Virus record (IMG/VR): IMGVR_UViG_3300005613_000001
Coordinates: 248,001-312,000 of that record
DNA: 64,000 nucleotides
Strand: one strand, 5' to 3'
Position numbers and translations under genes: made by a program
The notes under the pieces: generated by a model
Told to the model about the DNA's origin: nothing
The model's input: the letters and a program-made list of their open reading frames with translations, nothing else
Databases searched by the model: none
Shown: positions 9,282 to 60,213 of the stretch, piece by piece
Layout of the letters: every line of letters begins with the position of its first letter
Numbering within the stretch: position 1 is the first letter of the stretch

Positions 9282-10211
9282 AGAAAATATGTTCTTTTTG
9301 TATTTTTCCCTATAATTCATATCTTTTCCCCTATGATCCATATTACAGGACACCATCTTCATTGCCTCTGATGTTTTCTTATCTGGCTTCACCAGCCACC
9401 CCCACAACAACTCATATGCAAATTCATAATAAAAAATATCAAGTGCCCTTCCTATATCAATCATAAACGAATTACGCAGAGTGGCATGAAGCTTGTAAAT
9501 AAACCAACTTGCAAGCGCCCCCGCAACAAACAAATATATTGTCTCATCTTGATGGTTACTTTTTACTTTCTCTAAAATTTCATCAATAAAATCTGTTGCT
9601 GTTCTATAAGGAATATTTATATGACTATAATTTTCAAGCCCCGCTCGCTCCCCAAAATCTAAAAAATAAGGAGGGCCTACTATTACTATCCTACGATTCT
9701 TATACTTATTCAAAAACTCAATCAATTGCTTATTGATAGCATAAGATCTAAAAATTCCACCATGAAACAAAATGTCTTTATGCCTAATAAAATCATTCAT
9801 AATTTTATGCAGATGTGCAATACGTTTACTTTTGTATTTCATGTGTTGGCGTTTGGCTCGGCGGTAGTGATGAGCAGTATCATTGATGGCATATAAAATA
9901 TTTTCATCAACTCTTGATGTTATCAACTTCAAAATGTCAAAATATATTTCATCTTTTACAAACCATTTTGTAGTTTGTTTAACCATACCAGCAGCTAACT
10001 CTTTAAGATCCGCCTCAGAATCTATATTAAATTCACGATCAGGAAGTGCTTTATATATAAAATCCCAAACGGCGTGTTGGTGTTTCACGAAATAGAAATA
10101 GTTTTTAGAATCAATCCTATCGGAAAAATAATGCATTTTAGGTAAATGTACCTTAATATTATATTTTTCACTCAGGACAACTGACTTGATCTTAGGCTTG
10201 ACATGTATCAC
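9252..10211 (-). CDS. Putative GT-D-fold glycosyltransferase-like protein
   Basis: RIVIVGP, LFVAGALA, MIDIGRALD resemble GT-D family motifs. Confidence 0.35.
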   Translation of the reverse strand: MIHVKPKIKSVVLSEKYNIKVHLPKMHYFSDRIDSKNYFYFVKHQHAVWDFIYKALPDREFNIDSEADLKELAAGMVKQTTKWFVKDEIYFDILKLITSRVDENILYAINDTAHHYRRAKRQHMKYKSKRIAHLHKIMNDFIRHKDILFHGGIFRSYAINKQLIEFLNKYKNRRIVIVGPPYFLDFGERAGLENYSHINIPYRTATDFIDEILEKVKSNHQDETIYLFVAGALASWFIYKLHATLRNSFMIDIGRALDIFYYEFAYELLWGWLVKPDKKTSEAMKMVSCNMDHRGKDMNYREKYKKNIFSSYDFTYGIY

Positions 10212-10557
10212 AAAAGCCTCCGGCCTTTACTTTGCGATTGCACCTTGAACAATATGCTTGAGATGGAAAACCTCTAGTCACCATACCAATGCCGGTAGGT
10301 CTAGCAAAAGTAGCCACAGCATTCGTGCCTGTTGAAACTTCACTTAATTTAGCTTCATTCTCAGCCAACCACTCCTTAAAGCCTTTTTTCTTCTTCTTGG
10401 GAAGCCCCTCATGTTTGGTGCTAGCAAATTCTTCTGCATCTCCGGGTTTAATAGTTTTAGCAATTTTCTTTACTTTTGGACTAGCACATTTCTCGCCTTT
10501 TTGACAAGCATGTACCATTCCCATAAGTTGTTGTTGGCTTTTACTGACTGCTGGCAT
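10192..10557 (-). CDS. Conserved phage hypothetical protein with C-terminal Zn ribbon
   Basis: MPAVSKSQQQLMGMVHA, EFASTKHEGLP; internal GFKEWLAENE; CxxC...CxxC. Confidence 0.65.
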   Translation of the reverse strand: MPAVSKSQQQLMGMVHACQKGEKCASPKVKKIAKTIKPGDAEEFASTKHEGLPKKKKKGFKEWLAENEAKLSEVSTGTNAVATFARPTGIGMVTRGFPSQAYCSRCNRKVKAGGFCDTCQA

Positions 10558-10566
10558 TATTCATCC

Positions 10567-10974
10567 TTACATCATAGGGGGCGATTGACCTTGAGCCGCT
10601 GGACCCCATCCTTGTTGTAACATCTCATCAAATTCTTCTATTGGAATCGTGAAGCACCCCTCATCTGCGTCCGCTTCTTTAGGATCTTCGTCCTTCTCAT
10701 CCTCGCCTTTAGCGTGAATCACCTGTTGGGCTAAATGAGGGTTATTTGACGACGCTATTTGCAACTCCACATGAGTTGGCTCTTCGTCATCGGGCGTAAA
10801 AGCTTTAATGATGGTGGGCAACATATTATACATCTTGTCCCCAACTCTACCCGAGTAGGGTATATTTTGCCCTATGAATGCTGCATAATCTATATCCAAC
10901 ACGTCTTTGTGAGCCTGAAGATGAGACGGCTCTTTCTCATCTTCTTCTTTTTTAAGCCATTCGCGGAACTTCAT
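10567..10974 (-). CDS. Acidic hypothetical protein with CTS-like N-terminus
   Basis: MKFREWLKKEE; TATATA 5 nt upstream. Confidence 0.65.
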   Translation of the reverse strand: MKFREWLKKEEDEKEPSHLQAHKDVLDIDYAAFIGQNIPYSGRVGDKMYNMLPTIIKAFTPDDEEPTHVELQIASSNNPHLAQQVIHAKGEDEKDEDPKEADADEGCFTIPIEEFDEMLQQGWGPAAQGQSPPMM

Positions 10975-11047
10975 ACAGATATATACCTAATAAAAAACCA
11001 TTTTCACTTCGCTAATATTATATATAAAATAGGAGAAAGGCACAATA

Positions 11048-11503
11048 ATGGCTCAATTCGGCTCTGATTTAAAACATTTCGTCACATTATGGAATGAGAG
11101 CGAAGAGGTTAGAAACCAAATAAAAATACTGCTTGACGGTCAAAACCTCGTCATGTTCTTTAAAAAGGGGGATTCTATTTACGGATGCCCTGAAGAAAGT
11201 CGTATTACATACGCCATTATGAAAAATCCAGATGATGAAACATCAGATAAATGGATAGATGATGCTAACTTCATGGCTATGAATTTAAATAAAGCTCTAA
11301 TGGGTGCCAAAGTGCATAACATCTTCGCAAATAAGGACATAGGAGAAATTAAAGTATTAGACAAATCTAAAGTAGAAGATGCATTAGTAGATTTAGCAGC
11401 AGCCTTAGGAAAAGAACTAAAAGCAGAGAAGTTAGCTCCCAAACCAGACCAACCAAGCAACACCCCGACATCAAAAAGTGACGTGCCTCTGGGAGAAAAA
11501 TAA
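11048..11503 (+). CDS. Hypothetical protein
   Basis: ORF with AGGAG upstream; coupled to next gene by TAATG. Confidence 0.65.
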   Translation: MAQFGSDLKHFVTLWNESEEVRNQIKILLDGQNLVMFFKKGDSIYGCPEESRITYAIMKNPDDETSDKWIDDANFMAMNLNKALMGAKVHNIFANKDIGEIKVLDKSKVEDALVDLAAALGKELKAEKLAPKPDQPSNTPTSKSDVPLGEK

Positions 11504-12177
11504 TGGCTCTACCATTCGTGCCGGATAATCACAAACGCAAATGGCATTGTTTCGTGTGTGGTCTAATGTTCGAAGAATTTGAACCATTCAAACAACACAT
11601 ATTAGAAACACATGACGAAGGCAGAGACTTTGTAGTTTGCCCACTAAAACGGTGTGGCGCTCCTGTGCGAGATATGAAATCACACTTTAAGGTGAAGCAC
11701 CCTCGGGAGAAGCTTCCTAGAGGCGTACAAATGAAGGCTATCCTCTGGCGGGATCGCAAAGGCAAAAAAGGAAAGCTAGTAACCAGGAAACCCAAATTCA
11801 ACGAAGGGTGTGTCATATCCCAAAAAATGAATGGAAAAGAAATCCATTATAGATCGGGGTACGAACGAGAAGTGTATGGATTACTAGAAAGCCTAAACGA
11901 AGTTGTTGAATATGACACTGAGACGGTGGAAATCCCTTATTCTTTTAATGGTCGTCAACATAAATATTTGCCTGATATACAAATCATCTTTGCAAACGGG
12001 ACCGTAGAGTTGTGGGAAATCAAACCCGCCTCGCAAACTAGCGATCCACGTAATTTAGCCAAATGGGATGCAGCTAGATATTATTGTAATGTGCGTGGGT
12101 GGAAATTCAATGTGGTGACAGAGGTTGGCATTGGGAAGCTCAGGAGGGAGATTAAACGACGAAATCTTGCTCAATAA
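11503..12177 (+). CDS. T4 gp4/TnsA-like PD-(D/E)xK nuclease with two N-terminal C2H2 zinc fingers
   Basis: CFVC...F..H...H and CPLKRC...H...H; YRSGYE, IPY.......YLPD, WEIKP, AKWDAA..YC..GWKF.VVTE. Confidence 0.75.
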   Translation: MALPFVPDNHKRKWHCFVCGLMFEEFEPFKQHILETHDEGRDFVVCPLKRCGAPVRDMKSHFKVKHPREKLPRGVQMKAILWRDRKGKKGKLVTRKPKFNEGCVISQKMNGKEIHYRSGYEREVYGLLESLNEVVEYDTETVEIPYSFNGRQHKYLPDIQIIFANGTVELWEIKPASQTSDPRNLAKWDAARYYCNVRGWKFNVVTEVGIGKLRREIKRRNLAQ

Positions 12178-12449: not shown

Positions 12450-12458
12450 TGCTTATCC

Positions 12459-14659: not shown

Positions 14660-14883
14660 TAAGGCTGCTGCATTTGTTGAGCCGTTTGCTGTGCGTGTCC
14701 AGTATTCTGGGGATCATAAATTAATGTGGTCGCATAAACCCCATCTCTTTCCTCGGTGCGACTCTCAATCCCAGGAGGCAACTTATTGGTGCCTAACTTC
14801 TGAGCTAATTGCTGAACAGCCTTCGCATGAGCCGACCGTGCATTCGTGTCAATAGCTCTGGAAACTACACTCCTTGAACCCAA
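14656..14883 (-). CDS. Hypothetical protein, possibly the frameshifted 3' part of 14865-15080
   Basis: TTG start with no RBS, in the -1 frame at a TTTT run. Confidence 0.35.
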   Translation of the reverse strand: MGSRSVVSRAIDTNARSAHAKAVQQLAQKLGTNKLPPGIESRTEERDGVYATTLIYDPQNTGHAQQTAQQMQQPY

Positions 14884-15080
14884 AAGTCTCGGTCTTGGGC
14901 TGATATTGGCGGATTTTGAGCCGGGCCTTGAGGTTGTTCGCCTCCCATGAACTTGCCTAAACCCATACCTGCGCCAACTAATGCACCACCTAAAGCGGCT
15001 TTTCGTCCAAGTTTACCCCAATCAACTTCAGCGTAATATTCCGGCTGATTAACTTCTAGCCATTCTTTAAATGTTTGCAT
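14865..15080 (-). CDS. Hypothetical protein with CTS-like N-terminus and hydrophobic segment
   Basis: MQTFKEWLE; TATATA 6 nt upstream. Confidence 0.55.
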   Translation of the reverse strand: MQTFKEWLEVNQPEYYAEVDWGKLGRKAALGGALVGAGMGLGKFMGGEQPQGPAQNPPISAQDRDFWVQGV

Positions 15081-20701: not shown

Positions 20702-22867
20702 TTATTCAAAATCCCAGAAAGGCACCACTTCTGCATCCATCGCAGCCTGATTGCTTCCCTGGATGGAACACTCACAACATAAAGTTAAAGTTCCCGTGGT
20801 AAGATTCTCATTGACGAACCCATCCATATTAGGACTTTGAGTGATGTCAAAATCTGGAGGATCGCCTTCACTAGTGCAATTATCTTCTTCAAGAATCCAA
20901 TTTGGATTGGTAAACATACTCCAACGCCAAAGAACGTTCCCACATTCACACTCGCAACAAGTAGTCAAAGACTGATATAAATACTGACCATCATCCTCAG
21001 GCTCTACTGCAATGCAACCACCCGAACAATCTTCGGCCAATACATCCCAACTTGAACCATTCCATTCATATGTGGTTTCTCCGCACCAGCACTCACAACA
21101 AGTAATAATTTCCGTTTGACAGTCTGCCATGTCTTCGGTTGGTTCGGATGGCTTGCAACCATCCGAACACTCATCCTGAATCATCTCCCAACTGAACCCG
21201 CCGCCCTTCCACGATGCCCACCCACAACCGCAATCAGGCGGCATTTCAGCACAATAAGGAGGCACACAGCAAGATTCATAAGTATCGCCAGTAGTTAATT
21301 CCCATTCATTTATAATACCAGGGGGCGGATAATGCGGGATGCAGTCGCCAGTACATCTGTCATCTGATAGACCCCATTCGCCAAAAGAATTAACCATCCA
21401 CAAAGATGTGCCACATCTGCAATTACTGCAAGGAACTGTAGTCGGCCAACCGTAAATCCTTTGCAGGTGGGGGGCCAAATCACTTCCATCCCCCTCATTA
21501 GCCAGCGATTCACTCTCATAATTCCCTTGTTCCATTAGCCCTCCCATCTCATGCACTAAACCAAATACATGACCTAATTCATGAGCGGCTACATTTGCTA
21601 CGCTAGAACCATCATTGGGAGTTCCTTCCTCAGTTGCGCCTGTATCGGATCTGCGCCAATCAGCAAGAGGGTTAAAATGTATATCGCCGTGCTGCCCACC
21701 AATGACTCCTAGTTGTTCGGGCTCCTCGCCTTCTCCACCACACTCATAAAATTCCCCAGAGGCATGATGGGCGTGAGCAAGAGTGCCGATACTTAAATTA
21801 TGGAACGCATAACGTATATCGCCAACGCTAGGATAATCAGCCAATAAATAGGTTTCACCATCAATCCCAGTATTTGGAACATCCCCAGACTCGTCACCCA
21901 AAACGCTAAAACTTAAAGTTAAATCATTTGCATATCCGTTCGCTCTGCTAAAGGTGGTATTAAACAAATTCGCCCACCAGGCATGAGCTAAATCAGTATC
22001 AGCTTTAAATTCTGCGGCACTAGGAACCCCATCGTCATCTCCTAAAGTCTCTACGGACAGACCCGCTTCATACTTGGTAGGTGGATGAACATAACTTACT
22101 GTAATAGTAATTGATTGAGGACCACATGCCAACTTGGCTACCGCCTCTTTAATTTCAGGCCAAGGTTGTCCAATCGTTCTTCCATAATCACTCCCCGTAG
22201 TTGTAGGCAGTGTGTCAATATCAGAATTTCTTGCACATCTAGCATCTTGAATGTCCCCATCTTCTTCTGTTCCTAAAACGGGAGGCGGTAGCGGAGAGCA
22301 ATCAGGGCCACAACCATTATTTAACAACATCCATCCAGTGCCATAGAAAGAACCACACCAATTTGTCCCAGTTGAAACAGAGGTACTTAAACTCCGACAA
22401 CCAATCCACATCCATTTAGATAAACCACAACAAGACCCTGATAGTTTTACACAATCTGTGGCAATCACAATGGGGTTGTAACCAAAGGCTCCAGGCCCAG
22501 CAACAATTTCATTATCAGGATAAACAGGAACACAACATTCATCACATTTATTGTTGCCTAGTTTCCAAAAATAAGGAGGATTATGAAGGTCGCTAATATT
22601 TATAACATCGCCCGCCGATTGTCCTAATACAGTTGAATTGCAATCATACAACAACCATTTGCAATCCCCACAATCAGCAACCGCAGCAGCGGCTTTCATA
22701 CAAGAAGAGGGAGAATCTCTAAGCGGACGATCAGAAGGATCATCCGTATTGTCTTTATATTGTCTGTTATTGATTTTAATAGAGGCGGGGGATGCATACC
22801 CGCCTTTAGTTAAAATCAATGAATCAGGCACATCCTGCGGCCCACAATTATTAACAAACCTAGCCAT
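20702..22867 (-). CDS. Cys/Trp-rich repeat protein with matrixin-type metalloprotease domain
   Basis: LAHA, GDIHFN, AAHELGHVFGLVH plus Met-turn (GLM); repeated CG...W...W...C..C modules; TATATA upstream. Confidence 0.75.
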   Translation of the reverse strand: MARFVNNCGPQDVPDSLILTKGGYASPASIKINNRQYKDNTDDPSDRPLRDSPSSCMKAAAAVADCGDCKWLLYDCNSTVLGQSAGDVINISDLHNPPYFWKLGNNKCDECCVPVYPDNEIVAGPGAFGYNPIVIATDCVKLSGSCCGLSKWMWIGCRSLSTSVSTGTNWCGSFYGTGWMLLNNGCGPDCSPLPPPVLGTEEDGDIQDARCARNSDIDTLPTTTGSDYGRTIGQPWPEIKEAVAKLACGPQSITITVSYVHPPTKYEAGLSVETLGDDDGVPSAAEFKADTDLAHAWWANLFNTTFSRANGYANDLTLSFSVLGDESGDVPNTGIDGETYLLADYPSVGDIRYAFHNLSIGTLAHAHHASGEFYECGGEGEEPEQLGVIGGQHGDIHFNPLADWRRSDTGATEEGTPNDGSSVANVAAHELGHVFGLVHEMGGLMEQGNYESESLANEGDGSDLAPHLQRIYGWPTTVPCSNCRCGTSLWMVNSFGEWGLSDDRCTGDCIPHYPPPGIINEWELTTGDTYESCCVPPYCAEMPPDCGCGWASWKGGGFSWEMIQDECSDGCKPSEPTEDMADCQTEIITCCECWCGETTYEWNGSSWDVLAEDCSGGCIAVEPEDDGQYLYQSLTTCCECECGNVLWRWSMFTNPNWILEEDNCTSEGDPPDFDITQSPNMDGFVNENLTTGTLTLCCECSIQGSNQAAMDAEVVPFWDFE

Positions 22868-28189: not shown

Positions 28190-28831
28190 ATGCTACTCGA
28201 CGAAAACAAAATTAAATTCAAACGAATACCAGGGCAAGAACTCCTTGAAACCAAGTATAAATTGGTCAAAGAGGGGCTGATCGCCAAACAATCACACAAA
28301 CGACTATCAACTAATGTATCTTCTCACAACACATACAAGCTAATTAGGATAAGAAAATCCATACACGTCGCTCAGGGTCCGTCGTACTTCGCCTCCGCTC
28401 CCTTGGATCAATGCCCCAATTTGCCCACGCTTACCGAACCAGAACTTATTAGTTTAACCGAACCAGAACTAATCTGTATGACTAATGATGAAATTGGAGT
28501 TTCTCTATTTGCTGTCGAATACACAAGAACGAAATCTATCGTAGGGAAAACGCCTCCTAAAGTTATTGCCACTCCCAAAAAAGGCGGAATTGGCTCAAGC
28601 GTTGCCCGAAAACGTGTCGAAACAGGACAACACGGGCCAATTACAACACGTCGTTCTTTAGAATCAACAAGAAGTCAAAGAGTAGGCACAACACCCACTA
28701 AAGGACAAGGAAAAAGAGGCGGCGGATCAAAACGAATGAATGAAGGTAAACATGGCGTTCAAAAAGAGAGTCGCAGCCTAGCTGCTATTAGAACCGCTAA
28801 AGTTAGCAAGGCTGGCGCTGTTTCTCGTTAA
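28190..28831 (+). CDS. Hypothetical protein with basic low-complexity C-terminus
   Basis: TAAATA 5 nt upstream; LTEPELI duplicated. Confidence 0.5.
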   Translation: MLLDENKIKFKRIPGQELLETKYKLVKEGLIAKQSHKRLSTNVSSHNTYKLIRIRKSIHVAQGPSYFASAPLDQCPNLPTLTEPELISLTEPELICMTNDEIGVSLFAVEYTRTKSIVGKTPPKVIATPKKGGIGSSVARKRVETGQHGPITTRRSLESTRSQRVGTTPTKGQGKRGGGSKRMNEGKHGVQKESRSLAAIRTAKVSKAGAVSR

Positions 28832-31042
28832 TCGCGCACGCACCCTAAGAAATACATCATCCCAACTACCTTCAGTTTCTTGTCTAAATAGCCGAATTGA
28901 AGGATACCAAGGCGATACATCTCCCAAACCCCATCTCCAATCAGGCTTGTAAGGTAATAACCCCCACGCCTCTTTGCCCATCGCACCGGCCAAATGAAGA
29001 ACCGCTGTGTCTACCGATATTACTAAATCTAAAGCATCAACAATAGAGGCGGTATCCTCAAAATCGCCTACCTCCAGATTTAAAGCCATGTCTTGCAATA
29101 TGTCACATTCATCAGAGGTAATATTTTTCTGAAGCGAGTAGAGCTTTACGCCGGGCATCTTAAGTTGTTGAAAGCTTGATACATCAATTGATCTTCTTCT
29201 ATCATTAGGGTGCCGAGGATTGCCTTTCCAACAAATACCCACCTTATACTCATCCCCAATTAATACACAGTCAATTTGAGCGGCAATATATGGTTTATTG
29301 GGAATGTCATAGTAACCCAAAAGATGTGGCAAACTCACAATGGGGATGTGATAATCGTACTGAATCTCGTCACTCTTAATGTCCTTCAGGTGAATCTCAT
29401 CTACGCCCTCACAATGCTCAAGTAAATTAGCAATCACCAAAGAACAAGACAACACTACATGACAGCCCCGCTCTTTGAGTTTTGGCAAGAATCTTACAAA
29501 ATGAATCGCATCACCCAACCCCTGCTCGCAGAATACCACAACCCGCTTACCCTCCAAGTCATCTGTCCCATTCCACTTCTTGTCCGCCCCATATTGATTT
29601 AAATATGCTATCATCATCGGATAGTGATTTAAACGATGCTCGTATTCAACCCACGCCTCCTTATATTTCCCCATGAGTTGATAACAATAAAATAAGTTCA
29701 CATGTGCGCCCGAGAGACCAGGGCGAAGAGAAATGGCTGATTCTAAATACTCAGCAGCTTTTTGCAAATCCAAGGCATCCATATAGGCGCTCCCCAGATT
29801 TGTCATCACATAAGGATCAATCTTATACTCTAAAGATTTTAACAGCACTCCAATCGCAAGATCGCTCCTATCTACATTCCTGTATTGTAATCCCAAATTA
29901 TTCAAAAAAGAGGGATTCTCAGGAACCAATCCAACCGCCGTCTGAGCATGCTCCAAAGCCTTCTCCATATCCCTAGACGCATAACAAATAGATATGTTGT
30001 TGTGAAGTTCCGCATTATCAGGCTCTAACTCAATTGCCTTAGATAATAATGCAATTGCATCGTCAGGCTGTGATAGGTTGTTTTGAACAATCCCCAACAT
30101 TTGAAGCACATTGGTATTGTTGGGCTCTACCTTAAGAGCTTGTTGTAGTAAGCCCACCGCCTCTTTGTCTTTTCCCTGCTTACAGAGAAGCGTAGCACTA
30201 CCTACAGCCTTCTCTACTAAGTTCTGGATAGATTCAGGGGTCCGACTCTTCTTCTTTGTAAATTTTAAAGGAGGCGGCTCTCCGAAGATTCTACTGGAAA
30301 GCTCAATCGTTTCCTCATCAAACAAAGCAAGATATTCTGGGTCGTCTTCGTAATACTTCCACCGATTCATTAAATCCAAGTTTTTGGGCTCATTTACCGC
30401 CTCAAAACTGCTACCCCTACTGAATTCCCATCCTATAGTAGAATTAAAACCCTTATCCGAGAAGATTGCATCGGTATTGAATTCACCACTAATGCTTCTA
30501 CGATATTCCCTATCTTCAAACCACAAATTAAAATCAACCCTCACAGCATTCCTCAAATATTCAGTCTCCCCTAAAAACTCCTTAGCATATTGTTTCCAGA
30601 GATGAATTGTGAACTGATCTACAGCATTAGCTTTTCTCTGTGTCTCATCCTTATCAGATCGAACAATTTTGAGGCGGCTAGCAAATGTATTAAATGGATC
30701 GCGGAGGACAATGATAGGGGTACTCAATACCCTTTGTCGGTGAAGATCCACATAATCTAATGGGTGATCTTCAAAACTCAATAAATTAATCCCTTTGCCA
30801 GAGCCTCCTGCAAGATAATTCACATGCGACTTCAGAACTTCGACGGTTCCATCTGTATTCAACTTACAATTATTAAAATGACGCTTATCGCCGTACCAAT
30901 GGAGCAAAAGCCAATAGATTAAAGCATGATTGCCACTTCTCCGCAGTCCAAAAACATGCAGATCGCCCTTATTTTGAGGCACTTCCACTACATTTTGTTG
31001 GCGAAACAGCATATCTCGTATTTCTTTTAACATTTTTTCCAT
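28778..31042 (-). CDS. Fusion: sulfotransferase-like + TPR repeats + GT9-like glycosyltransferase
   Basis: GLRRSGNHA and LRDPFNTFAS; TPR repeats; EQGLGDAIHFVRF, GICWKGNP, DLVISVDTAVLHLAGAMG, DWRW. Confidence 0.85.
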   Translation of the reverse strand: MEKMLKEIRDMLFRQQNVVEVPQNKGDLHVFGLRRSGNHALIYWLLLHWYGDKRHFNNCKLNTDGTVEVLKSHVNYLAGGSGKGINLLSFEDHPLDYVDLHRQRVLSTPIIVLRDPFNTFASRLKIVRSDKDETQRKANAVDQFTIHLWKQYAKEFLGETEYLRNAVRVDFNLWFEDREYRRSISGEFNTDAIFSDKGFNSTIGWEFSRGSSFEAVNEPKNLDLMNRWKYYEDDPEYLALFDEETIELSSRIFGEPPPLKFTKKKSRTPESIQNLVEKAVGSATLLCKQGKDKEAVGLLQQALKVEPNNTNVLQMLGIVQNNLSQPDDAIALLSKAIELEPDNAELHNNISICYASRDMEKALEHAQTAVGLVPENPSFLNNLGLQYRNVDRSDLAIGVLLKSLEYKIDPYVMTNLGSAYMDALDLQKAAEYLESAISLRPGLSGAHVNLFYCYQLMGKYKEAWVEYEHRLNHYPMMIAYLNQYGADKKWNGTDDLEGKRVVVFCEQGLGDAIHFVRFLPKLKERGCHVVLSCSLVIANLLEHCEGVDEIHLKDIKSDEIQYDYHIPIVSLPHLLGYYDIPNKPYIAAQIDCVLIGDEYKVGICWKGNPRHPNDRRRSIDVSSFQQLKMPGVKLYSLQKNITSDECDILQDMALNLEVGDFEDTASIVDALDLVISVDTAVLHLAGAMGKEAWGLLPYKPDWRWGLGDVSPWYPSIRLFRQETEGSWDDVFLRVRARLTRNSASLANFSGSNSS

Positions 31043-31083: not shown

Positions 31084-32505
31084 ATGTCGTCATTCTACAA
31101 TCTTTGGTCAAAAATAACAATCCAAGAGTCCCTTGAGGACTACTATGTAGAATTTTTCGCTAAACTCAAGAGTTATCCAGGCGATGTTTATGTGCATTTT
31201 ACAGATGGTGTTACTGATAATATACCTAAAGGGGCAATAGAACAACCTAAAATCGGCATCAATCCCAGAAATAAAGGCGGATATTACGGCGACCCAACAG
31301 GAGTGTATGCTTTTCCCCGAGATTACGTCCTAAGCGACTTAGGCGTTAACCACTTCTTCTACTCAAAGAAGTATATTTACATTATCCAACTTAAGCCTGG
31401 GCAGCGAATTCTTAATTTGACAACAATAACCCTTCCTGAAGCTGAGGGGGTAGCAGCCAACTTGGGGCTGACTTATGAATTCGCCGCCACCGCCAGGATG
31501 AACTCAGGGAAAGAACCAGGAAAAATACTTTGGACAACCTTCATTGACAATTACAAAAAGAACAAAGGCGGAAATGCCGCTTTTAATAATGCAGTCAGAA
31601 GAGCGGGATATGATGCAATTGTTGATGATGGAAGTGGCATCATACATCATAATGAAAAAAACCAAATAGCCATTCTTAATCCTAGAGGATATAGAGTGCT
31701 TGATATGATGAAAAACCCCATAAGAAGTGGAGTTTCACAACAACGACTGGCAATGCGCATCCTGAAGATAGTAGCAACTCAAGTATTAGGGAAATACTCC
31801 CTAACAACCAGCCGAAGCAGTCGTTCTGAAAAAACCTACCACGCGAAGGGTAGAATTAAGAATAAACCGTTCACTGTATATCTCACCCAATACGAAGAAG
31901 GAACCAGATTCCGAGCAAGTATTGGGATAGGCTCTCACTACATGGATAGCTACATCAAACCCTTCACCATCATAGTGCCAGAGGATACTTACTTTGATGT
32001 AGACAACGAAGCTAAAACCATTGCCGCCGCTATCAATGCAAAACTAGAGAAAACTCAAATCAGGTCCAGCAATAAGAAAAAGGTAGCAGATTTAGCAAAT
32101 GCCTTAGCACAAATTATGGGCTTTACCAAAATGCCCGAACTTGATGAAGAAAGTGCCACCCTAACAAGACGATACAAAAAAGGCAAATTTAGATTTAATG
32201 TTCGCTATAGTATGGGCAAATACACTTTACACATTCGCCTCGATACTCAAGGTTTATATGCAGTATCAATGGACGGAAGCTCAGAAATACCAGAAACAGC
32301 ACTAGAAGGCGATCTAAAATCTATAGCTAAAATGTATCTCATTGATACTTTAGATGATCTGGAAAAAAGAACCTATCAACTCTACAATCCAGACGAAGAA
32401 GCCCACAAAGACCGGGCGATGTCCTATACTCATGCTGAAAAAGGTAAGAGAATGTTGGACTTCTTAGAGTTTATAAGGAACAAGTTTTCAATAACTGTTT
32501 CCTAA
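31084..32505 (+). CDS. Putative ADP-ribosyltransferase-fold protein (N-terminal domain) with unknown C-terminal domains
   Basis: VYVHFT, GVYAFP, AGYDAIVD...HHNEKNQIAILNP pattern; TAAATA upstream. Confidence 0.45.
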   Translation: MSSFYNLWSKITIQESLEDYYVEFFAKLKSYPGDVYVHFTDGVTDNIPKGAIEQPKIGINPRNKGGYYGDPTGVYAFPRDYVLSDLGVNHFFYSKKYIYIIQLKPGQRILNLTTITLPEAEGVAANLGLTYEFAATARMNSGKEPGKILWTTFIDNYKKNKGGNAAFNNAVRRAGYDAIVDDGSGIIHHNEKNQIAILNPRGYRVLDMMKNPIRSGVSQQRLAMRILKIVATQVLGKYSLTTSRSSRSEKTYHAKGRIKNKPFTVYLTQYEEGTRFRASIGIGSHYMDSYIKPFTIIVPEDTYFDVDNEAKTIAAAINAKLEKTQIRSSNKKKVADLANALAQIMGFTKMPELDEESATLTRRYKKGKFRFNVRYSMGKYTLHIRLDTQGLYAVSMDGSSEIPETALEGDLKSIAKMYLIDTLDDLEKRTYQLYNPDEEAHKDRAMSYTHAEKGKRMLDFLEFIRNKFSITVS

Positions 32506-41477: not shown

Positions 41478-42416
41478 ATGAACCAAAAAACAAAACCAGA
41501 TTGGCGTGAGAGATTAGATGCTAAGAATAAAGAATTCAAGGAAAAAGCATTAGAAAATTATAAGGATGACTACGATTTTAGTGTTATGGGGGAATTCGCT
41601 GGTGACTTAGCCATTATTATGGAAAATCAGCGACTTATGAACGATGCGCTCCCAAAAAATGATCCAATTGACCTTCAATTAATATATGATATATACACTA
41701 AGTTCTTAGGTTGGCATCTTGTTTCTATTCAACCCATGCTTGGACCCGCCTCTCTTGTTTATTATCCTAAATTTCAACGGAACGAAGTTTCAGAGGATAT
41801 AGATTTAAACCTTGTTTCGGAGGAAATTGCGGCTAGAACTAGGAAATTAAGAACAGTTGATTTAGATAGCGAAGGCGACCTTTCCGAGCGTATAGCTAAT
41901 GAAATGACCAGAGAAGTTGCAACAGATTTGAGGAATAATGCTGGGACAGTAGCAACGAGAACTGATGCCGATGACAGACCTCTGTATTTAGCTATGATGG
42001 AAGTAAGTGGTGTTATTCATCGCAAGACATTGATTGATGGCTCTAATTGGATTTATACTACTCCCTCTTTAGCGGAAGAGCTTTTTGAACCTTACGGTAA
42101 AGGGGCGACTCTAGTTAAATCGGATGCTGAAATTTACAAAGCTGGCGTTATGGGTGGCCGCTGGTCGGTATATGTTGATACAAAAGCCCCTGAAAATGAA
42201 ATTCTCATTGGTTATAGAGGAAGAGAACCAGACGCTTATTCGCAGCGTAGTTGGTATTATAAGGCGGGATATTTCTACTGTCCTTATATTGCTTTAACTA
42301 AAACTCCTGGCATAAATACAGAAGACTTCTCCTCCCGTGGCGGATATTTAATGAGATACGGGAAAAAGTTGACAAGAGAGGGTGCGAAGTATTATGCTAA
42401 GCTCAAAATAGAATGA
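41478..42416 (+). CDS. Short T4 gp23/gp24-like capsid protein paralog
   Basis: LVSIQPMLGPASLVYY, IAARTRKL, GRWSVYVD, LIGYRG, AGYFYCPYIAL, MRYG. Confidence 0.8.
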   Translation: MNQKTKPDWRERLDAKNKEFKEKALENYKDDYDFSVMGEFAGDLAIIMENQRLMNDALPKNDPIDLQLIYDIYTKFLGWHLVSIQPMLGPASLVYYPKFQRNEVSEDIDLNLVSEEIAARTRKLRTVDLDSEGDLSERIANEMTREVATDLRNNAGTVATRTDADDRPLYLAMMEVSGVIHRKTLIDGSNWIYTTPSLAEELFEPYGKGATLVKSDAEIYKAGVMGGRWSVYVDTKAPENEILIGYRGREPDAYSQRSWYYKAGYFYCPYIALTKTPGINTEDFSSRGGYLMRYGKKLTREGAKYYAKLKIE

Positions 42417-42419: not shown

Positions 42420-43100
42420 ATGGACAGACTTTACCAAATTCTCGAATATAACATGACTCGCCAACAAGCCAAGGCGTTTAAAGTTGCCTTGATTTGGGAG
42501 GAGCTAACTAAGAAGCTCTACCCAGGGGAGCAATGTGGTAGGTTGAATAGAAAAGGTGACCCACGCAAGTCAATTCTCTTTAAATATTGTTATAAATTGG
42601 TCCGCACGATGCAGGGAGTCATTCTTGATGACCAATATCGTTATTATATTCGCGCTCAATTAGACACTCTTAGGAATTATAAAGTTGGGGATTGTCACGC
42701 CAATATTAATCCTAGTTGTTTAGTGGGGAAGAAAGCTTGGTGGAGATGGACAACATGGGCTAAGAAGTTACAATCTATGGAGCGAACGAGCAAAGTAGAG
42801 ATATCGCCATTAGAGTCCAAAATTAAGGCTCGGCTTAAGAAAACTAAAGAGTTTCTTTTACATGAATTTAAAAAACTCCCCACCAAGGAAGATATATGCA
42901 AGGCGTATGAAAGTAGAGCATTAATTAGATGGATTGTATTGGGTAAGGTATGTGGCTATTATGCTGTATTATCGCCCCAGATTGCACAATGCTTAGGCAG
43001 TAAAAACTTTGATGACGCATTCCGGTTTGACACACAGATTTACAGATCACATATTACACCTGAGATCGAGAAGTTTTTTGAGGATGAGTTTGGTGATTAA
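42420..43100 (+). CDS. Hypothetical protein
   Basis: ORF. Confidence 0.65.
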   Translation: MDRLYQILEYNMTRQQAKAFKVALIWEELTKKLYPGEQCGRLNRKGDPRKSILFKYCYKLVRTMQGVILDDQYRYYIRAQLDTLRNYKVGDCHANINPSCLVGKKAWWRWTTWAKKLQSMERTSKVEISPLESKIKARLKKTKEFLLHEFKKLPTKEDICKAYESRALIRWIVLGKVCGYYAVLSPQIAQCLGSKNFDDAFRFDTQIYRSHITPEIEKFFEDEFGD

Positions 43101-43885
43101 TACCACTTCATTCCTACGGACATCGCCTCAATAATTTCATCTCTTGATTGGCTGGGGAAGAAGTAGAAGTCATTATCAGACGGCATGATTTCCCATTTAT
43201 GCCCTCCAAGTGACGATTCCACGTTAGTATTAAGGACTCTTATTTTGCCAGATTGGGGGTCAAAACTTATATCGGTTAGATTTTCTTCCACTCTTTGTTG
43301 GTCGGGGGCTTGTATTCCGTGGCCTCTTACCCCAAGTTTTATGATGTAGTTAGTATCATTGATTTTAGTCACACCTTCAAAGATGAAGATATCGTGGGCA
43401 ACTCGTCTAAACTTATTCGCCATTCCTACTACTAGATTTTCTAGTTCTGGGTATTGTGATTTAGGACTTTCTAGGGGTTGGTTATCTACATATTTTATTA
43501 AATTAAATACTTCGTCAGCTACGTTTTCTTCAAATCCTCCATAACCATCACGATTTATTTGGTAATATTTCTTAGTGAGCCATACTTTATTTCCCTGCAA
43601 GTCTACACCCATCTTAGCTACTTCTAATGCAAGAGTAGGACTGATTTCTAGTTTGATGGCTCCCGGCCTATCCCCCCAATGGATTTCATTAACATATTTA
43701 ATTTTCGCCTTTTTGCCGGGGAGATGACGGTCTTTTAAGAGTCCTGTCAATTCATCTATATCAAAGTTGTGAATTGGCTTTTCTTCCTCAACCCTATTTT
43801 TAGGGGCGGGTTCTTTGTCTCGTTCGAAGCCAAACAGATCATTAAGATCAGTTTCCAGCCATAATTTGAAGTTTAGATCTTTCAT
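43097..43885 (-). CDS. Hypothetical protein with CTS-like N-terminus (start moved to 43885)
   Basis: MKDLNFKLWLE; TAAATA 8 nt upstream. Confidence 0.65.
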   Translation of the reverse strand: MKDLNFKLWLETDLNDLFGFERDKEPAPKNRVEEEKPIHNFDIDELTGLLKDRHLPGKKAKIKYVNEIHWGDRPGAIKLEISPTLALEVAKMGVDLQGNKVWLTKKYYQINRDGYGGFEENVADEVFNLIKYVDNQPLESPKSQYPELENLVVGMANKFRRVAHDIFIFEGVTKINDTNYIIKLGVRGHGIQAPDQQRVEENLTDISFDPQSGKIRVLNTNVESSLGGHKWEIMPSDNDFYFFPSQSRDEIIEAMSVGMKWY

Positions 43886-43911
43886 TGCTACACTATTTAT
43901 GTTAATATATC

Positions 43912-43919
43912 TATAAATA
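43912..43919 (+). promoter_or_regulatory. T4-type late promoter box
   Basis: Exact TATAAATA 4 nt before ATG 43924; back-to-back with a TAAATA on the minus strand. Confidence 0.6.
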
Positions 43920-43923
43920 CAAT

Positions 43924-44229
43924 ATGAAAACATTTCAAATTTGGGTTGAGTCAAGGCAAAAACAGGAAATCGCGGATACTCTGGTATCACAATTGGGATT
44001 AAATAAAGAAACTGGGCTATCTGCGCCCCTTGATAGTTTTGATCCTTCTGATTTAGCAAGCAAAATACAGGGATTGGGCATTTGGAGACAATTATCCCCT
44101 GAAAAACAGGCTGCTGTCAAGGGTAAAATAGATAATCAACAAGGGACCATTGGTGATTTAGTTGATGAGATGATAGAAATTGATACTTCTGGCAACTTAG
44201 GTGGTGTCTCGCCTCCAATTGGAGTTTAA
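43924..44229 (+). CDS. Hypothetical protein with CTS-like N-terminus
   Basis: MKTFQIWVES. Confidence 0.65.
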   Translation: MKTFQIWVESRQKQEIADTLVSQLGLNKETGLSAPLDSFDPSDLASKIQGLGIWRQLSPEKQAAVKGKIDNQQGTIGDLVDEMIEIDTSGNLGGVSPPIGV

Positions 44230-45511: not shown

Positions 45512-46051
45512 TTAATCTAAGAAATCATCCACTTTGGGGTCCATATGCCATTGCATTAATTGTTTAAAAATAACTTGATTAGGAACTCCGTGAATATTTC
45601 TATCTCCCATCTTTAATGCTGCAAATTGAAGTCTGCTTAGATTTTTAATTTTATCTCTCAAGAGTTCAACGAGTTTATCCATTTGTTCTGGCTGGGCGAA
45701 CTTTACTTCATAATTATGAATGTAAGCAGCCTCAACATAGGGTTGCATATGTGATTTCTTAACATTGGTGTTATCAACAAATATCGGGCTGATACCACCT
45801 TCCATTGCTTTTACTACTCTTTCTAAATTTTGCCTATGGAACCAGTGCATTTTGTTAGCAGCCATAGCGGCCCTAATGTTATCTTCGTATTCTTCTTTTG
45901 TTTTGCCTTCCAAATAATCATCTGTTGAGAAGATCACGCCTCCTAGTTCTTTAGCCATTTTTCGCGCAAGGGTAGATTTCCCTGTGCCGGAGATGCCCCG
46001 CATAAGGTAAAGAATGCGACTTTCGTTTTCTAGGAATGTCTTAAAATCCAA
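45512..46051 (-). CDS. P-loop kinase (N4BP2/PNK-like) with CTS-like N-terminus
   Basis: MDFKTFLENE; LMRGISGTGKST, FSTDDY, VDNTN, HGVP. Confidence 0.8.
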   Translation of the reverse strand: MDFKTFLENESRILYLMRGISGTGKSTLARKMAKELGGVIFSTDDYLEGKTKEEYEDNIRAAMAANKMHWFHRQNLERVVKAMEGGISPIFVDNTNVKKSHMQPYVEAAYIHNYEVKFAQPEQMDKLVELLRDKIKNLSRLQFAALKMGDRNIHGVPNQVIFKQLMQWHMDPKVDDFLD

Positions 46052-46607
46052 ATTCTTGCCCGCCTCTTAATTCTGGATATTTCTGCAATATTTCTGGAAT
46101 CTTACTTTCCATTTCACGCATGAATTGTTGTTCTGCGGCTTTGGGATCAATTTCATCGGTTAATCCACTTGATTCCCTTTCTGACGAATGGGTTGCTTCG
46201 TGGACAATGGTGGAGGCTATTTGCAGTACCGCCTCTAAATCATTTCTTGCTTGGCTTAGAATTCTTCTCACATTAACGTGAATGGTATTACTAGATTTAA
46301 TATTTTGGGGCTTCACTCCATATTTTTGGTACATCATGGAGGGGATATTACCCAATTCGTCCTTCTGTACACCTCTGTAGATTAGCCATCTTTCCACATC
46401 TGGTGGTAGAAGTTTCTGATTCTCAGCAGAATTATACATTCCATATGCCCCGGTGGCAAGGTTGGCAATCGTAGAGATATTCACTAGCAATTGCGGTCTA
46501 TAGGCCCTCACAAGTTCTACAGCGATATGAGCCTTATCATAGAGAGCATCTATTTGACGTTCATCCACCTGGGTATCTTGTGCTGAAAACCAATCTTTAA
46601 AATTCAT
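46041..46607 (-). CDS. HExxH metallopeptidase-like protein with CTS-like N-terminus (start moved to 46607)
   Basis: MNFKDWF; STIVHEATH; TATATA 5 nt upstream. Confidence 0.6.
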   Translation of the reverse strand: MNFKDWFSAQDTQVDERQIDALYDKAHIAVELVRAYRPQLLVNISTIANLATGAYGMYNSAENQKLLPPDVERWLIYRGVQKDELGNIPSMMYQKYGVKPQNIKSSNTIHVNVRRILSQARNDLEAVLQIASTIVHEATHSSERESSGLTDEIDPKAAEQQFMREMESKIPEILQKYPELRGGQEFGF

Positions 46608-46767: not shown

Positions 46768-47205
46768 GTGGATTTCAAAACGTGGCTGAAAGAGAGAGAA
46801 ACCCATAAGGCTGCTGCTATGGCAGTTGTCTATGAAGGTAGGGTATTAATTTTACATAGAGGCCCTACGGCTCCTTGGATGCCAAATAAATGGAATCTTC
46901 CTGGGGGTGACGTAGAAAAGAATGAATCTCCACATGATGCAGCAATGCGAGAATGTAAAGAAGAGGCGGGCATTGTTCCTAAAAATGTAAGAGCATTAAG
47001 AACGTTTCGTGCGCCTGATTACATCTTAGATATTTTCACGGGAGAAGTTTTGACAGATGCGGTAAAAATCAATTGGGAAAGCCAATCATATGCTTGGGTA
47101 ACTCCTGATAAAATAAATCATTATGGGTATGTGCCATTTACGAAAGAAGTGTTAAAGCAAATATTTTCTTCCCACCATGATATTCGTAGCCCAAGCCCTC
47201 TTTGA
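46768..47205 (+). CDS. NUDIX hydrolase with CTS-like N-terminus
   Basis: MDFKTWLKERE; PGGDVEKNESPHDAAMRECKEEAG Nudix box. Confidence 0.88.
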   Translation: MDFKTWLKERETHKAAAMAVVYEGRVLILHRGPTAPWMPNKWNLPGGDVEKNESPHDAAMRECKEEAGIVPKNVRALRTFRAPDYILDIFTGEVLTDAVKINWESQSYAWVTPDKINHYGYVPFTKEVLKQIFSSHHDIRSPSPL

Positions 47206-52284: not shown

Positions 52285-52587
52285 ATGAAGAATTTCCGAA
52301 CATGGCTAGAACAGCGACAAAAAGGCAAGAGCCTGCCTGAAACGGGATACCCACATAGATATACGACAATTTATAGGGCTACCAATGAATTTGAATTCAA
52401 ATCAATGGATTATGTAACCCTGAGTCGTAAATGGGCAAAAGAACACGCCGAGCATCAAACGGCTGTGGAAGAAGAACCTTACCACGTTATAAGAGCTATG
52501 GTACAGGCAGATCAAGTTTTTGAGGCGTACAATCCAGGGGAATATTTTTACGACGGACCAACTATTCGCGGGAAGCTTTGCACTTAG
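52285..52587 (+). CDS. Small protein, possible ART-like fold, with CTS-like N-terminus
   Basis: MKNFRTWLEQ; TIYRA, DYVTLSRKWA, NPGEYFY. Confidence 0.5.
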   Translation: MKNFRTWLEQRQKGKSLPETGYPHRYTTIYRATNEFEFKSMDYVTLSRKWAKEHAEHQTAVEEEPYHVIRAMVQADQVFEAYNPGEYFYDGPTIRGKLCT

Positions 52588-55641: not shown

Positions 55642-55644
55642 TAA

Positions 55645-56503: not shown

Positions 56504-56504
56504 T

Positions 56505-57232: not shown

Positions 57233-57242
57233 GACTTTTCTC

Positions 57243-57668: not shown

Positions 57669-57682
57669 AGGATACCCATGAC

Positions 57683-57708
57683 AAAAAGCCCCCATTCGGG
57701 GGCTTTTT
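57683..57708. terminator. Bidirectional terminator-like hairpin
   Basis: AAAAAGCCCCC-ATTC-GGGGGCTTTTT. Confidence 0.7.
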
Positions 57709-57711
57709 GAT

Positions 57712-58521: not shown

Positions 58522-58566
58522 GTGAATGCCTTCCTTTCGAGGCGTTCACTATTTAAGTAACCCGCC

Positions 58567-58965
58567 TCATTTTTCAATTGGTTTTTCAGGTTCTTTAACG
58601 GTATCTTCGGGTTTCTCAACTGAATCTTCTGGTTTTTCGGGCTTAACAGGTGGTGCCCATCTGGTACACAACATTTGCCCAGGACCAGTGTAAATTGTAT
58701 ATTCTACGCCTCTGTAGTAGGCATAATGCCAATTCTGGGGTTCTAGAATTTTTGCATCTAGAGTTTGGGTATCATCAATTAACTGTTGGGCAATTTTCTG
58801 TTCAACTATTGCCTCAAGTTGGGACTCTGTAATTGTAATAGTTTTCTCTTTTGGTGCCTCCTTTTTTGGTTCTTTCTCTTGACCGTAAGCTCCTGCTAAG
58901 AACACACAGGCTACGATACTTAGACAACCAATGCACACCACTGCAACAATCGCTCTTGTAGACAT
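58567..58965 (-). CDS. Secreted/exported hypothetical protein
   Basis: Signal peptide-like N-terminus; KPE repeats; AGGAG upstream. Confidence 0.6.
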   Translation of the reverse strand: MSTRAIVAVVCIGCLSIVACVFLAGAYGQEKEPKKEAPKEKTITITESQLEAIVEQKIAQQLIDDTQTLDAKILEPQNWHYAYYRGVEYTIYTGPGQMLCTRWAPPVKPEKPEDSVEKPEDTVKEPEKPIEK

Positions 58966-58975
58966 TTCTACACTC

Positions 58976-59077
58976 CTAAGGGTTCAGATTTTCAACTACA
59001 ATCTCAGCTACGAACAATAGCGTGCCGAATAATGCACCACACAAAGCACCCAACACGGCTATGTCACGATATTTCAT
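58976..59077 (-). CDS. 33-aa hydrophobic peptide
   Basis: Hand translation MKYRDIAVLGALCGALFGTLLFVAEIVVENLNP; ATG at the 3' end of the RNase P RNA. Confidence 0.4.
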   Translation of the reverse strand: MKYRDIAVLGALCGALFGTLLFVAEIVVENLNP

Positions 59078-59379
59078 AATTCTTAATCCCGTAAGCCAAC
59101 TTCTGTTCTATGTTGTCATTTATCTTTTGGCCGCTACCCGTCCTCATCGAGCCGCTCACCCTCTCGGACTGTTTGCGTTGCTGCCTCGGTGGTGCAAGCG
59201 AGATATGCGAGATATGATTCATCGTCAGCGAAGTTATATGGAACAATTCCTATTTGCTCCCAAACTTCGAATCGTTGAATCATATCTTTCAATTATCTCT
59301 CCCACCTTAAGCGGTACAGGCTGGACTTTCCTCACATTCCACTTTCATGGAGTAGTGCGACAACTCGGATTAAGAATTA
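59077..59379 (-). ncRNA. rnpB: RNase P RNA (catalytic subunit), compact bacterial type-A-like
   Basis: GAGGAAAGTCC (59323-59333), AGATAAATGAC and ACAGAA-GTTGG-CTTAC (59091-59106); 13-bp P1; P2 GTTGTC/GACAAC; GNRA-capped P3; P4 AAGTCCAGC/GTTGGCTT with bulged U. Confidence 0.88.
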
Positions 59380-59726
59380 ACTGTATCTATTCTGGTCTTC
59401 CAACGCCAAGTATGTAACCACACTCTAGCATTCTTGGCGTGTTCTGCTACATCTTCACCTGGATGTTTCGCTTCGTGTGGCAACTTCCACCCCGAATTTC
59501 TTTTGAGGCGGTCTTGAATTATTTTTTCTTGTTCCTCAAATGAAGGGGAAGTATTGATGCACACTACTAGATCAAAAGGCCAACAACTGACCACTTTACC
59601 TTTTCTGCCCGCGTGTTTGCCCTTTGTGATTAAAGCTTCTCTATCTTTGTTGTACTGACGCGACATGCTATGGATGCCAGAACTGATAAACAATAGGACA
59701 ATTATTAGACATATAGCTGTAATCAT
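59370..59726 (-). CDS. Hypothetical protein
   Basis: ORF whose stop codon lies in the P1 5' strand of the RNase P RNA; start uncertain. Confidence 0.5.
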   Translation of the reverse strand: MITAICLIIVLLFISSGIHSMSRQYNKDREALITKGKHAGRKGKVVSCWPFDLVVCINTSPSFEEQEKIIQDRLKRNSGWKLPHEAKHPGEDVAEHAKNARVWLHTWRWKTRIDTVNS

Positions 59727-59841
59727 TTGCCTTTGCCTTATTTGTAGTGGGAATCCCACCAATTCCTAATATAATTCTTACCGAAAACTGATTGCCAAAT
59801 GTTACATGGAATATCTATAAACAAGTAGCACAATACATTAA

Positions 59842-60213
59842 TCATTGAGGCGGCTTCCAATACATCGTGCCCGAGAATGGTTTTGATAATCTGTAATCTT
59901 TGTTTCTTCCCTTGTTTGGGATTAATCCATTTCTTCGGTAAAATCGGGTCAATGCAGCTTTCTTTCCTTTGCCGGGTTCAGGGGCTACTATCAAAGGTTT
60001 GCCAACGGATGCTGCAAAATCTTTCAGTGCTGATATTACTGCTGATCCAATTCCTTGGTTTCTACTATCTTTGTGAATTTTAATGTCCGACAATTCTACG
60101 GAGTAAATATTTTCCCAAGCAAAAAGTGACGCTATTTCTGGATACTGCTGTTCCAGAGAAGCCACTAGTTTTTGAAGTTCGCTATTCTCTTCTAGCCATT
60201 GTCGGAATTGCAT
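59842..60213 (-). CDS. GNAT acetyltransferase with CTS-like N-terminus
   Basis: MQFRQWLEENSE; RNQGIGS, RFYRRNG; TAAATA 4 nt upstream. Confidence 0.8.
   Translation of the reverse strand: MQFRQWLEENSELQKLVASLEQQYPEIASLFAWENIYSVELSDIKIHKDSRNQGIGSAVISALKDFAASVGKPLIVAPEPGKGKKAALTRFYRRNGLIPNKGRNKDYRLSKPFSGTMYWKPPQ

Follow-up and report, generated by a model that had tools for sequence, protein, structure and literature searches.

A short N-terminal peptide shared by unrelated proteins of an uncultured giant phage is probably a T4-type capsid targeting sequence

The stretch of DNA analysed here (the window) comprises 64 kb, at roughly 248.0-312.0 kb, of IMG/VR contig IMGVR_UViG_3300005613_000001, an uncultured phage with a whole genome of 527,112 bp, and the element at issue is a short peptide – hereafter the tag – that recurs at the start of otherwise unrelated proteins encoded within it. 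The window is 100% identical to that contig and is also covered by two ENA contigs (238,844 bp and 216,527 bp). It is densely coding, with 95 greedy open reading frame (ORF) calls and 94.6% coverage, and by its gene content it is the replication and nucleotide-metabolism region of a large phage: a UvsW-like helicase, a UvsX-like recombinase, a gp32-like single-stranded DNA-binding protein, a DnaB/gp41-like helicase, a DNA polymerase and a further helicase are encoded together with ThyA, DHFR, numerous sugar- and methyl-transfer enzymes and two tRNAs. A nucleotide search with the window found no match among cultured phages, and protein searches returned distant relatives only. One of these, the uncultured phage LR756511.1 (595 kb), is collinear with the window at its 359-405 kb, at amino-acid identities of 30-60%; its complete genome (1038 genes) was used for genome-wide tests, and 29 related IMG/VR loci were compared.

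Nine ORFs of the window start M-x(1-4)-F-[KR/Q]-x-[W/F]-[L/V/F]-E, with the tag lying within residues 2-10 (Table 1). An earlier interpretation of the window from its letters (the sequence-only reading) had claimed nine N-terminal tags, and each is present exactly where it was placed; the starts at 43885 and 46607 fall within longer mechanical ORFs and we take them to be right because orthologues begin at the same tag. The internal copy that it had reported in 10192-10557, GFKEWLAENE, is likewise real, while a looser version, MSSFYNLW at 31084, is rejected since its spacing and residues do not fit the motif. Five of the tagged genes are clustered at 43.1-47.2 kb, two of them diverging from a 38-bp control region; in relatives, too, the divergent partner of the 43885 gene (the equivalent of 43924) is tagged. 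The same genome has a further tag, MKTFRQFLLEK, ~9 kb upstream of where the window begins.

The tagged proteins are small (71-262 amino acids), carry at most one domain each and include four ORFans. The domains that the sequence-only reading had placed behind the tag fared unevenly. Pfam upholds the kinase at 46051 (AAA_33, 7e-15; Zeta_toxin matches weakly, below threshold, and there is a match to a PHROG polynucleotide-kinase family) and the NUDIX hydrolase at 46768, whose close orthologues retain the tag (MNFKNWFEE, MNFREYMEA). The GNAT assignment at 60213 is marginal (Acetyltransf_1, 20.9 bits against a cut-off of 20.7). At 46607 the HExxHxxERE motif is kept in three orthologues, which include the starts MEFKNWF and MRTWHEFV, and neither Pfam nor a PDB sequence search gave a match to the protein. 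The supposed ART-like domain at 52285 stays a hint: a fold search gave no significant match and a PDB sequence search nothing, and ART-fold proteins (Arr-2, KptA, ParT, pertussis S1) recur among the top fold matches, which are weak.

Table 1. Location of the features discussed in the text; coordinates are those of the window unless another genome or locus is named (aa, amino acids; nt, nucleotides)
Feature	Coordinates	Strand	Length	N-terminus or tag	Remarks
Tagged ORF, no known domain	10567..10974	-	135 aa	MKFREWLKKEE	acidic; TATATA 5 nt before ATG
Tagged ORF	14865..15080	-	71 aa	MQTFKEWLEVNQ	Gly-rich; TATATA 6 nt before ATG
Tagged ORF (A1 family)	43097..43885	-	262 aa	MKDLNFKLWLE-TDLN-DLFGFE	TAAATA 8 nt before start
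Divergent control region	43886..43923	.	38 bp		one TAAATA per strand, 8 nt and 4 nt from two tagged start codons
Tagged ORF	43924..44229	+	101 aa	MKTFQIWVESRQ	form nearest T4 MKTYQEFIAE; TAAATA 4 nt before start
Tagged P-loop kinase	45512..46051	-	179 aa	DFKTFLENE	TTG start; Shine-Dalgarno site
Tagged ORF	46041..46607	-	188 aa	MNFKDWF	with HEATHSSERE; TATATA box upstream
Tagged NUDIX hydrolase	46768..47205	+	145 aa	DFKTWLKERE	Pfam NUDIX 2e-19; GTG start; Shine-Dalgarno site
Tagged protein	52285..52587	+	100 aa	MKNFRTWLEQRQ-GKSLPETGY	TAGATA 7 nt before ATG
Tagged GNAT-like acetyltransferase	59842..60213	-	123 aa	MQFRQWLEENSE	TAAATA 4 nt before ATG
DUF3008-like protein with internal tag	10192..10557	-		KKKKKG-FKEWLAENE (nt 10380-10354)	DUF3008-like N-terminal module (residues 3-56), internal tag, then C-terminal part
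Candidate tenth, divergent tag	60725..61009	-		MSVYEQFVWLE	uncertain; YEQFV, cf. T4 YQEFI
Gp23-like paralogue (T4 major capsid protein family)	41478..42416	+	312 aa		Pfam Gp23 4e-21 over model positions 178-347
T4 gp4 head-completion protein homologue	11503..12177	+			TnsA-like nuclease fold
Small divergent portal-protease gene	LR756511 528598-528945	+			also in L091, L092, L102 and L122
Small divergent portal-protease gene	L083:5973-6371	-			

The position of the motif is far from random. When F[KRQ]xW[LVFI] is read in all six frames of the window, eight of the 12 matches stand 2-5 codons behind the start of a long ORF (68 amino acids or more). With starts set conservatively at those of the longest ORFs, the window has six N-terminal matches where the internal rate predicts 0.20 (P = 6e-8), and LR756511 has 20 where it predicts 2.7 (P = 1e-11). 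The full pipeline applied to real and to reversed sequence gave seven versus none for the window and 24 versus one for LR756511; residue shuffles gave a mean of 0.33 (maximum three in 200) and of 2.6, respectively. Enrichment at N-termini over shuffled controls, which had been put forward among the checks on the sequence-only reading, is found in the window and genome-wide in LR756511. The codons of the tag vary synonymously (F as TTC/TTT; K/R as AAA/AAG/CGC/CGA; L as CTT/CTA/CTG/TTG), which argues that the conserved object is the peptide and not the DNA; comparison across tags revealed no nucleotide conservation beyond what the amino acids dictate.

Beyond the window the tag is found on numerous unrelated ORFs in the 29 related loci and in LR756511, including proteins of 489-1076 amino acids: 92 ORFs across the clade carry the pattern, and these fall into 66 sequence families. 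A logo of 75 tags reads M-x(1-4)-F(72)-[K48 R24 Q3]-x-[W41 F24 Y10]-[L29 F21 I9 V8 M8]-E(43), with Glu directly after the aliphatic residue in 43 of the 75. LR756511 has at least 24 tagged genes and the window at least nine in 64 kb, as compared with three capsid targeting sequence (CTS) proteins in T4. Homologues of the protein at 43885 (A1) number 49, on contigs of up to 280 kb; they keep the tag at their N-termini down to ~35% identity, and behind it come a short spacer of variable sequence and DIFGF[DE]. Retention of the tag in such orthologous families, A1 and NUDIX alike, indicates purifying selection on the peptide. Recognisable cargo elsewhere in the clade comprises a C39-like peptidase, a HAD_SAK_1 phosphatase and a PRTase-domain protein; most tagged proteins have no known domain – a Pfam search with 20 more from relatives gave mostly no match – and in this they are like the T4 internal proteins.

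The tag appears to be a handle rather than a part of the protein that bears it. The Phe, Trp and Leu at i, i+3 and i+4 would make up one hydrophobic helix face. Right behind the tag, at residues 13-14, Pfam places the start of the NUDIX and of the kinase domain; in the kinase the tag ends one residue ahead of the domain. The AlphaFold2 model of A1 has low predicted local distance difference test (pLDDT) scores at residues 1-37; residues 6-18 form a helix and 19-41 a disordered linker, which leads to a confident globular domain for which a fold search found no significant PDB match; in the model of the 52285 protein a low-scoring stretch at residues 1-10 precedes a confident 90-residue domain (pLDDT 91.5). 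It is on account of these domain boundaries and low-confidence N-termini that we regard the tag as detachable. Detachment could occur at its Glu: in an alignment the maturation site of T4 gp23, FLTE|AE, falls opposite AVLLE|NQ of the clade's major capsid protein (MCP), a predicted site with the same hydrophobic-Leu-Glu shape as the W-L-E of the tag, which makes cleavage there plausible.

The closest known counterpart is the CTS of phage T4, which Mullaney and Black reportedly described for the internal proteins IPI, IPII and IPIII. A regular expression derived from the window and applied, with the ORF criteria, to the complete T4 genome has ipII and ipIII as its sole matches, both starting MKTYQEFIAE, so that the window pattern recognises exactly T4 CTS proteins; ipI (MKTFKEFTS) is a near miss. 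Among the diverse internal proteins of T-even phages a conserved CTS is the only shared feature, and it is this that encapsidates them into the scaffolding core (PMC3012670). A literature search found no paper connecting the CTS with huge phages and none mentioning LR756511.

The clade also possesses the head machinery with which a CTS would be expected to work. By phmmer LR756511 has homologues of T4 gp17, gp20, gp21 (3.6e-23) and gp23, and its head protease is a Pfam Peptidase_S77 (2.5e-27). For the MCP (PF07068) more than 7800 homologues were found, ~80% identical and on contigs as long as 673 kb. The gene order portal, small divergent gene, p616, S77, scaffold, MCP holds in 29 of 29 MCP loci of at least 18 kb, and LR756511 too has portal, S77 protease, scaffold and MCP in this T4-type succession. 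Tags occur within this module: in LR756511 the MCP gene is followed by a same-strand 212-residue ORF and then by two large tagged proteins, one of ~486 amino acids (VDFKEWYF being the most likely start) and one of 1076 (MEFREWF), and the small divergent gene between portal and p616/S77, which occupies the position of the T4 prohead-core genes 67 and 68, has in many relatives the start MKTF[KQR]xY[VL], which differs little from the T4 CTS. The window has a gp4 homologue of its own and, in the middle of its replication region, a Gp23-like paralogue 41% identical to the LR756511 MCP. On the strength of this paralogue we assign the window's genome to the T4-type head lineage; as to its role, a vertex protein, a decoy and a remnant are all conceivable. 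A second, weak gp21-like ORF of the prohead protease family (phmmer 5.6e-7) lies far from the head module of LR756511 (242240-243133, minus strand).

An upstream box further links tagged genes with virion genes. Boxes that the sequence-only reading had listed – TAAATA, TATATA and, at 52285, the variant TAGATA – are confirmed ahead of seven of the nine tagged window genes, while 46051 and 46768 have Shine-Dalgarno sites instead. In LR756511 TA[A/T/G]ATA stands 3-9 nt before the start codon in 16 of 24 tagged genes versus 75 of 1038 genes overall (odds ratio 32, P = 5e-14), and other long genes with the box encode a gp15-like tail-sheath stabiliser, a gp13-like head-tail adaptor and a baseplate wedge subunit; under a strict definition 11 of the 95 window genes have it. 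The box resembles the T4 late promoter, TATAAATA. Searches of LR756511 by phmmer with the T4 proteins found no homologue of gp55, gp33 or gp45; with neither gp55 nor gp33 detected, the box counts as a putative T4-like late promoter only. Its distance from the start codon points to mRNAs that are leaderless or nearly so. The box alone was rejected as a marker of cargo, for untagged genes carry it, structural ones and a helicase among them.

A -10-like box (TATATA, TAAATA, TATAAT or TATATT) 3-9 nt before the start and no Shine-Dalgarno site is in fact seen at many window genes, tagged or untagged, with such starts at 1722(-), 19136(-), 22867(-), 27564(+), 28190(+), 40113(-), 40172(+), 48796(-), 48814(+) and 51851(-); this implies that leaderless or near-leaderless mRNAs may be widespread in the window. 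One untagged gene of this kind, 20702-22867 (minus strand, TATATA 5 nt before ATG), encodes a 721-residue protein with a matrixin-like (Peptidase_M10) zinc-metallopeptidase domain.

We consider it probable that the shared peptide M-x(1-4)-F-[K/R]-x-[W/F/Y]-[L/I/V/F/M]-E is a T4-type CTS and that, by analogy with T4, it marks proteins which the giant phage packs and injects with its DNA. The head-packaging role proposed in the sequence-only reading is supported by the T4 search, the S77 head module, the tags within head modules, the shared box and cargo domains known from polyvalent proteins. The pathway might run as follows. Late in infection tagged and virion proteins would be made together, as their common association with the box suggests, many from near-leaderless transcripts headed by TA[A/T/G]ATA. 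The tag, to judge from its residues a short amphipathic helix and, from Pfam boundaries and low AlphaFold confidence, one outside the folded cargo domain, would dock the cargo onto the scaffolding core of a T4-type prohead, as happens in T4. The gp21-family Peptidase_S77 prohead protease would probably then remove it at or near the conserved Glu, and the mature cargo would remain beside the DNA in the head until infection, when it would pass into the host. Host takeover or counter-defence as the function of this cargo is speculative, and an anti-defence role, for which T4 IPI is the analogy, is conjecture.

Several observations weigh against this interpretation. The S77 protease and head module of the window's own 527-kb genome are inferred from its relatives; that genome is absent among the 120 MCP homologues listed of more than 7800 and among the best 80 IMG/VR MCP loci. 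The clade is uncultured, and its nearest cultured MCP is ~33% identical. The T4 CTS ends I-A-E and the T4 cleavage rule is L/I-x-E; in the tag the Glu directly follows an aliphatic residue (W-L-E), and several tags have no strict L/I-x-E site. In LR756511 the MCP, portal and protease genes have no box immediately upstream, some non-structural genes do have one, and gp55 and gp33 were not found by the search described above. Finally, the T4 CTS paradigm does not predict an internal tag, and yet one follows a DUF3008 module in two genomes: LR756511 544812-545360 (minus strand) combines DUF3008 with KG-FKEWLEEN in the same architecture as window 10192-10557, the C-terminal parts being unrelated.

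Could such a peptide be conserved for some other reason? It might be a generic docking helix for a different shared partner – a phage chaperone, the membrane, a replication or transcription hub, an adaptor for timed degradation – given that a short amphipathic helix could bind many partners. The internal copies after DUF3008 fit this slightly better than they fit a CTS, most tagged window genes stand among replication and nucleotide-metabolism genes outside any head module, and the missing L/I-x-E sites would need no excuse. Even so we think it unlikely: in T4 the motif coincides with the CTS only, tagged genes occur inside head modules, the upstream box is common to structural genes and the cargo domains are common to injected polyvalent proteins, while a scattered distribution is no objection to a CTS when T4 internal protein genes also lie outside the head gene cluster. 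A quite improbable alternative is that the conserved start is an N-terminal coding or nascent-peptide signal needed to translate mRNAs with a very short leader or none. The promoter-like box 3-9 nt before the start in 16 of 24 tagged LR756511 genes and seven of nine in the window suits it well, but synonymous codons are free and the exchange of K for R (AAA versus CGC/CGA) alters up to three codon positions, which argues for selection on the peptide; moreover the tag is present on Shine-Dalgarno-led GTG and TTG genes (46768, 46051) and internally (10192-10557), 59 of 75 box-proximal LR756511 genes are untagged, and T4 ipII and ipIII have the peptide behind ordinary Shine-Dalgarno sites.

Nor does descent offer an easy way out. 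If gene starts had spread as a cassette, through common ancestry or recombination, a functionless peptide could mark what is really a DNA-level shuffling signal. T-even internal protein loci are hypervariable cassettes with a conserved 5' end, which speaks for such an origin, as do the cluster of five tagged genes at 43.1-47.2 kb and the diversity of the T-even internal proteins (PMC3012670). Against it, nucleotide conservation does not go past the amino-acid constraint, orthologous families such as A1 and NUDIX hold on to the peptide even where they have diverged far, upstream regions differ (box or Shine-Dalgarno site) and no long near-identical DNA repeats were seen over gene starts; we therefore hold this to be very improbable indeed. 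The probability that we are dealing with chance or a compositional artefact is negligible: short as the motif is, 6-9 occurrences against 0.2-0.3 expected in the window, 20-24 against 1-2.7 in LR756511, reversed and shuffled controls that are almost empty, and recurrence in 29 related contigs leave it next to no room.

The tag resembles the T4 CTS in its length of about ten residues at the N-terminus, its composition (M-K-T-[Y/F]-[Q/K]-x-[F/W]-[I/L/V]) and its closing conserved Glu; in being borne by otherwise unrelated, fast-evolving small proteins scattered over the genome; and in belonging to a lineage with a gp23-type MCP, a gp20 portal, a scaffold and a gp21-family S77 protease. It differs in preferring Trp as the second aromatic residue and in ending W-L-E where T4 has F-I-A-E. 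The T4 CTS is known on three small internal proteins, and has been used as a tool for protein delivery; in the clade dozens of genes per genome are tagged, recognisable enzymes are included and cargo may exceed 1000 amino acids. The internal copy after DUF3008, the many near-leaderless genes behind TAAATA/TATATA, and the uncultured state of ~0.5-Mb phages and their hosts are further differences. The comparison supports the view that the clade tag is a variant of the T4 CTS mechanism, in which the novelty would be a much larger, partly enzymatic cargo set in an uncultured megaphage clade.

Other systems are less close. In the heads of phiKZ-like phages and SPN3US, ejection and inner-body proteins are processed by the gp175/gp245 prohead protease (PMC5694885, PMC7411985, PMC10052503). 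The likeness lies in the varied protein load of a giant head, in its trimming after Glu by a prohead protease and in its ejection into the cell, all of which is proposed for the clade. The processed proteins of those phages – a different lineage – have long propeptides and an S/A/G-x-E site, and we know of no short N-terminal tag shared among them; the tag, at ~9 residues and with an aromatic and then an aliphatic residue before Glu, does not conform to that cleavage motif. Encapsulin cargo-loading peptides are likewise short and transferable and direct diverse enzymes into an HK97-fold shell; they are usually C-terminal, are not cleaved, serve a cellular nanocompartment and are unrelated to the tag in sequence. 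A Sec/Tat signal peptide, in which a basic N-terminal region precedes a hydrophobic core of 10-20 residues, was also rejected, for acidic or polar residues follow the tag and there is no hydrophobic stretch.

The cargo domains themselves lead to the polyvalent proteins of phages and conjugative elements (Iyer et al. 2017, cited in PMC7824862), in which ART and GNAT domains are injected along with phage DNA (PMC7824862). The domain of the 52285 protein is a mobile unit of ~90 residues with 179 homologues, in which R31 and E86 are invariant. It occurs free-standing with the same tag (MIFRQWLEE, MDFKTWLEE, MQFRHWLEN), but also embedded in a giant protein of 1640 amino acids (P0297) with NUDIX, DUF7178 and ART-PolyVal PF18760, and a second giant (P0245) joins it with GNAT. 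Tagged and polyvalent proteins thus share a repertoire of NUDIX, GNAT and 52285-type domains and a proposed delivery with DNA; the difference is that in the clade these are separate proteins of 70-260 amino acids, each with its own address peptide, and are not strung together in one giant. Because the same domains occur inside giant polyvalent proteins, the clade seems to deliver effector domains as separate tagged proteins, and this, if the label works as in T4, would be an alternative to polyvalent delivery of the same domains.

Should the label work as it does in T4, what uncultivable giants inject beside their DNA could be listed from sequence alone; such a list would point to host-takeover and counter-defence factors of the first minute of infection, and would supply natural orthogonal packaging tags. 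The principle may reach further. In other metagenomic phages, proteins distantly homologous to the 52285 domain or to the NUDIX 'RGPTAPWMPNKWNLPGG' family have other recurrent N-termini of 8-16 residues – MKIYRIAQ / MKIYKIS, MNLSESYKKRLQELAG, MKLLFENWREFV, MIKLKSLLEG, xIRKFIRKVLxE, MITTINEYK and MNWYKKAQ (P0205, P0210, P0229, P0260, P0223, P0237, P0266, P0277, P0316, P0319, P0181, P0182 and P0325-P0335). One might tentatively suppose, though we hold it doubtful, that short N-terminal address peptides are a general, lineage-specific code for capsid-packaged (injected) proteins in many uncultured phage lineages. Were this so, with each address fitted to a scaffold of its own, one could read from sequence which proteins uncultured phages inject, and the W-type tag would be one dialect, used in a clade whose MCP homologues number in the thousands and whose genomes reach ~670 kb.

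Some further features of the region deserve mention. Window 28778-31042 (minus strand) encodes a 754-residue protein with a TPR array and a weak, sub-threshold C-terminal match to glycosyltransferase family 9. The window, both near this gene and further away from it, also encodes DegT-type aminotransferases, a sulfotransferase, methyltransferases, an ATP-grasp enzyme and a His-phosphatase, and together these suggest a sugar- or DNA-modification pathway. The two tRNA genes, tRNA-Ser(GGA) at 61025-61109 (minus strand) and tRNA-Leu(CAG) at 63036-63119 (minus strand), adjoin the gene of a radical-SAM protein at 63155-63946 (plus strand). In the same genome, ~3-4 kb upstream of the window start (L003:5630-7464), lies an IS605-type OrfB/TnpB gene with a Cas12f1-like TNB domain; it adjoins a serine resolvase/MerR-HTH gene, and GIY-YIG and HD/Cas3_HD-like genes are nearby.

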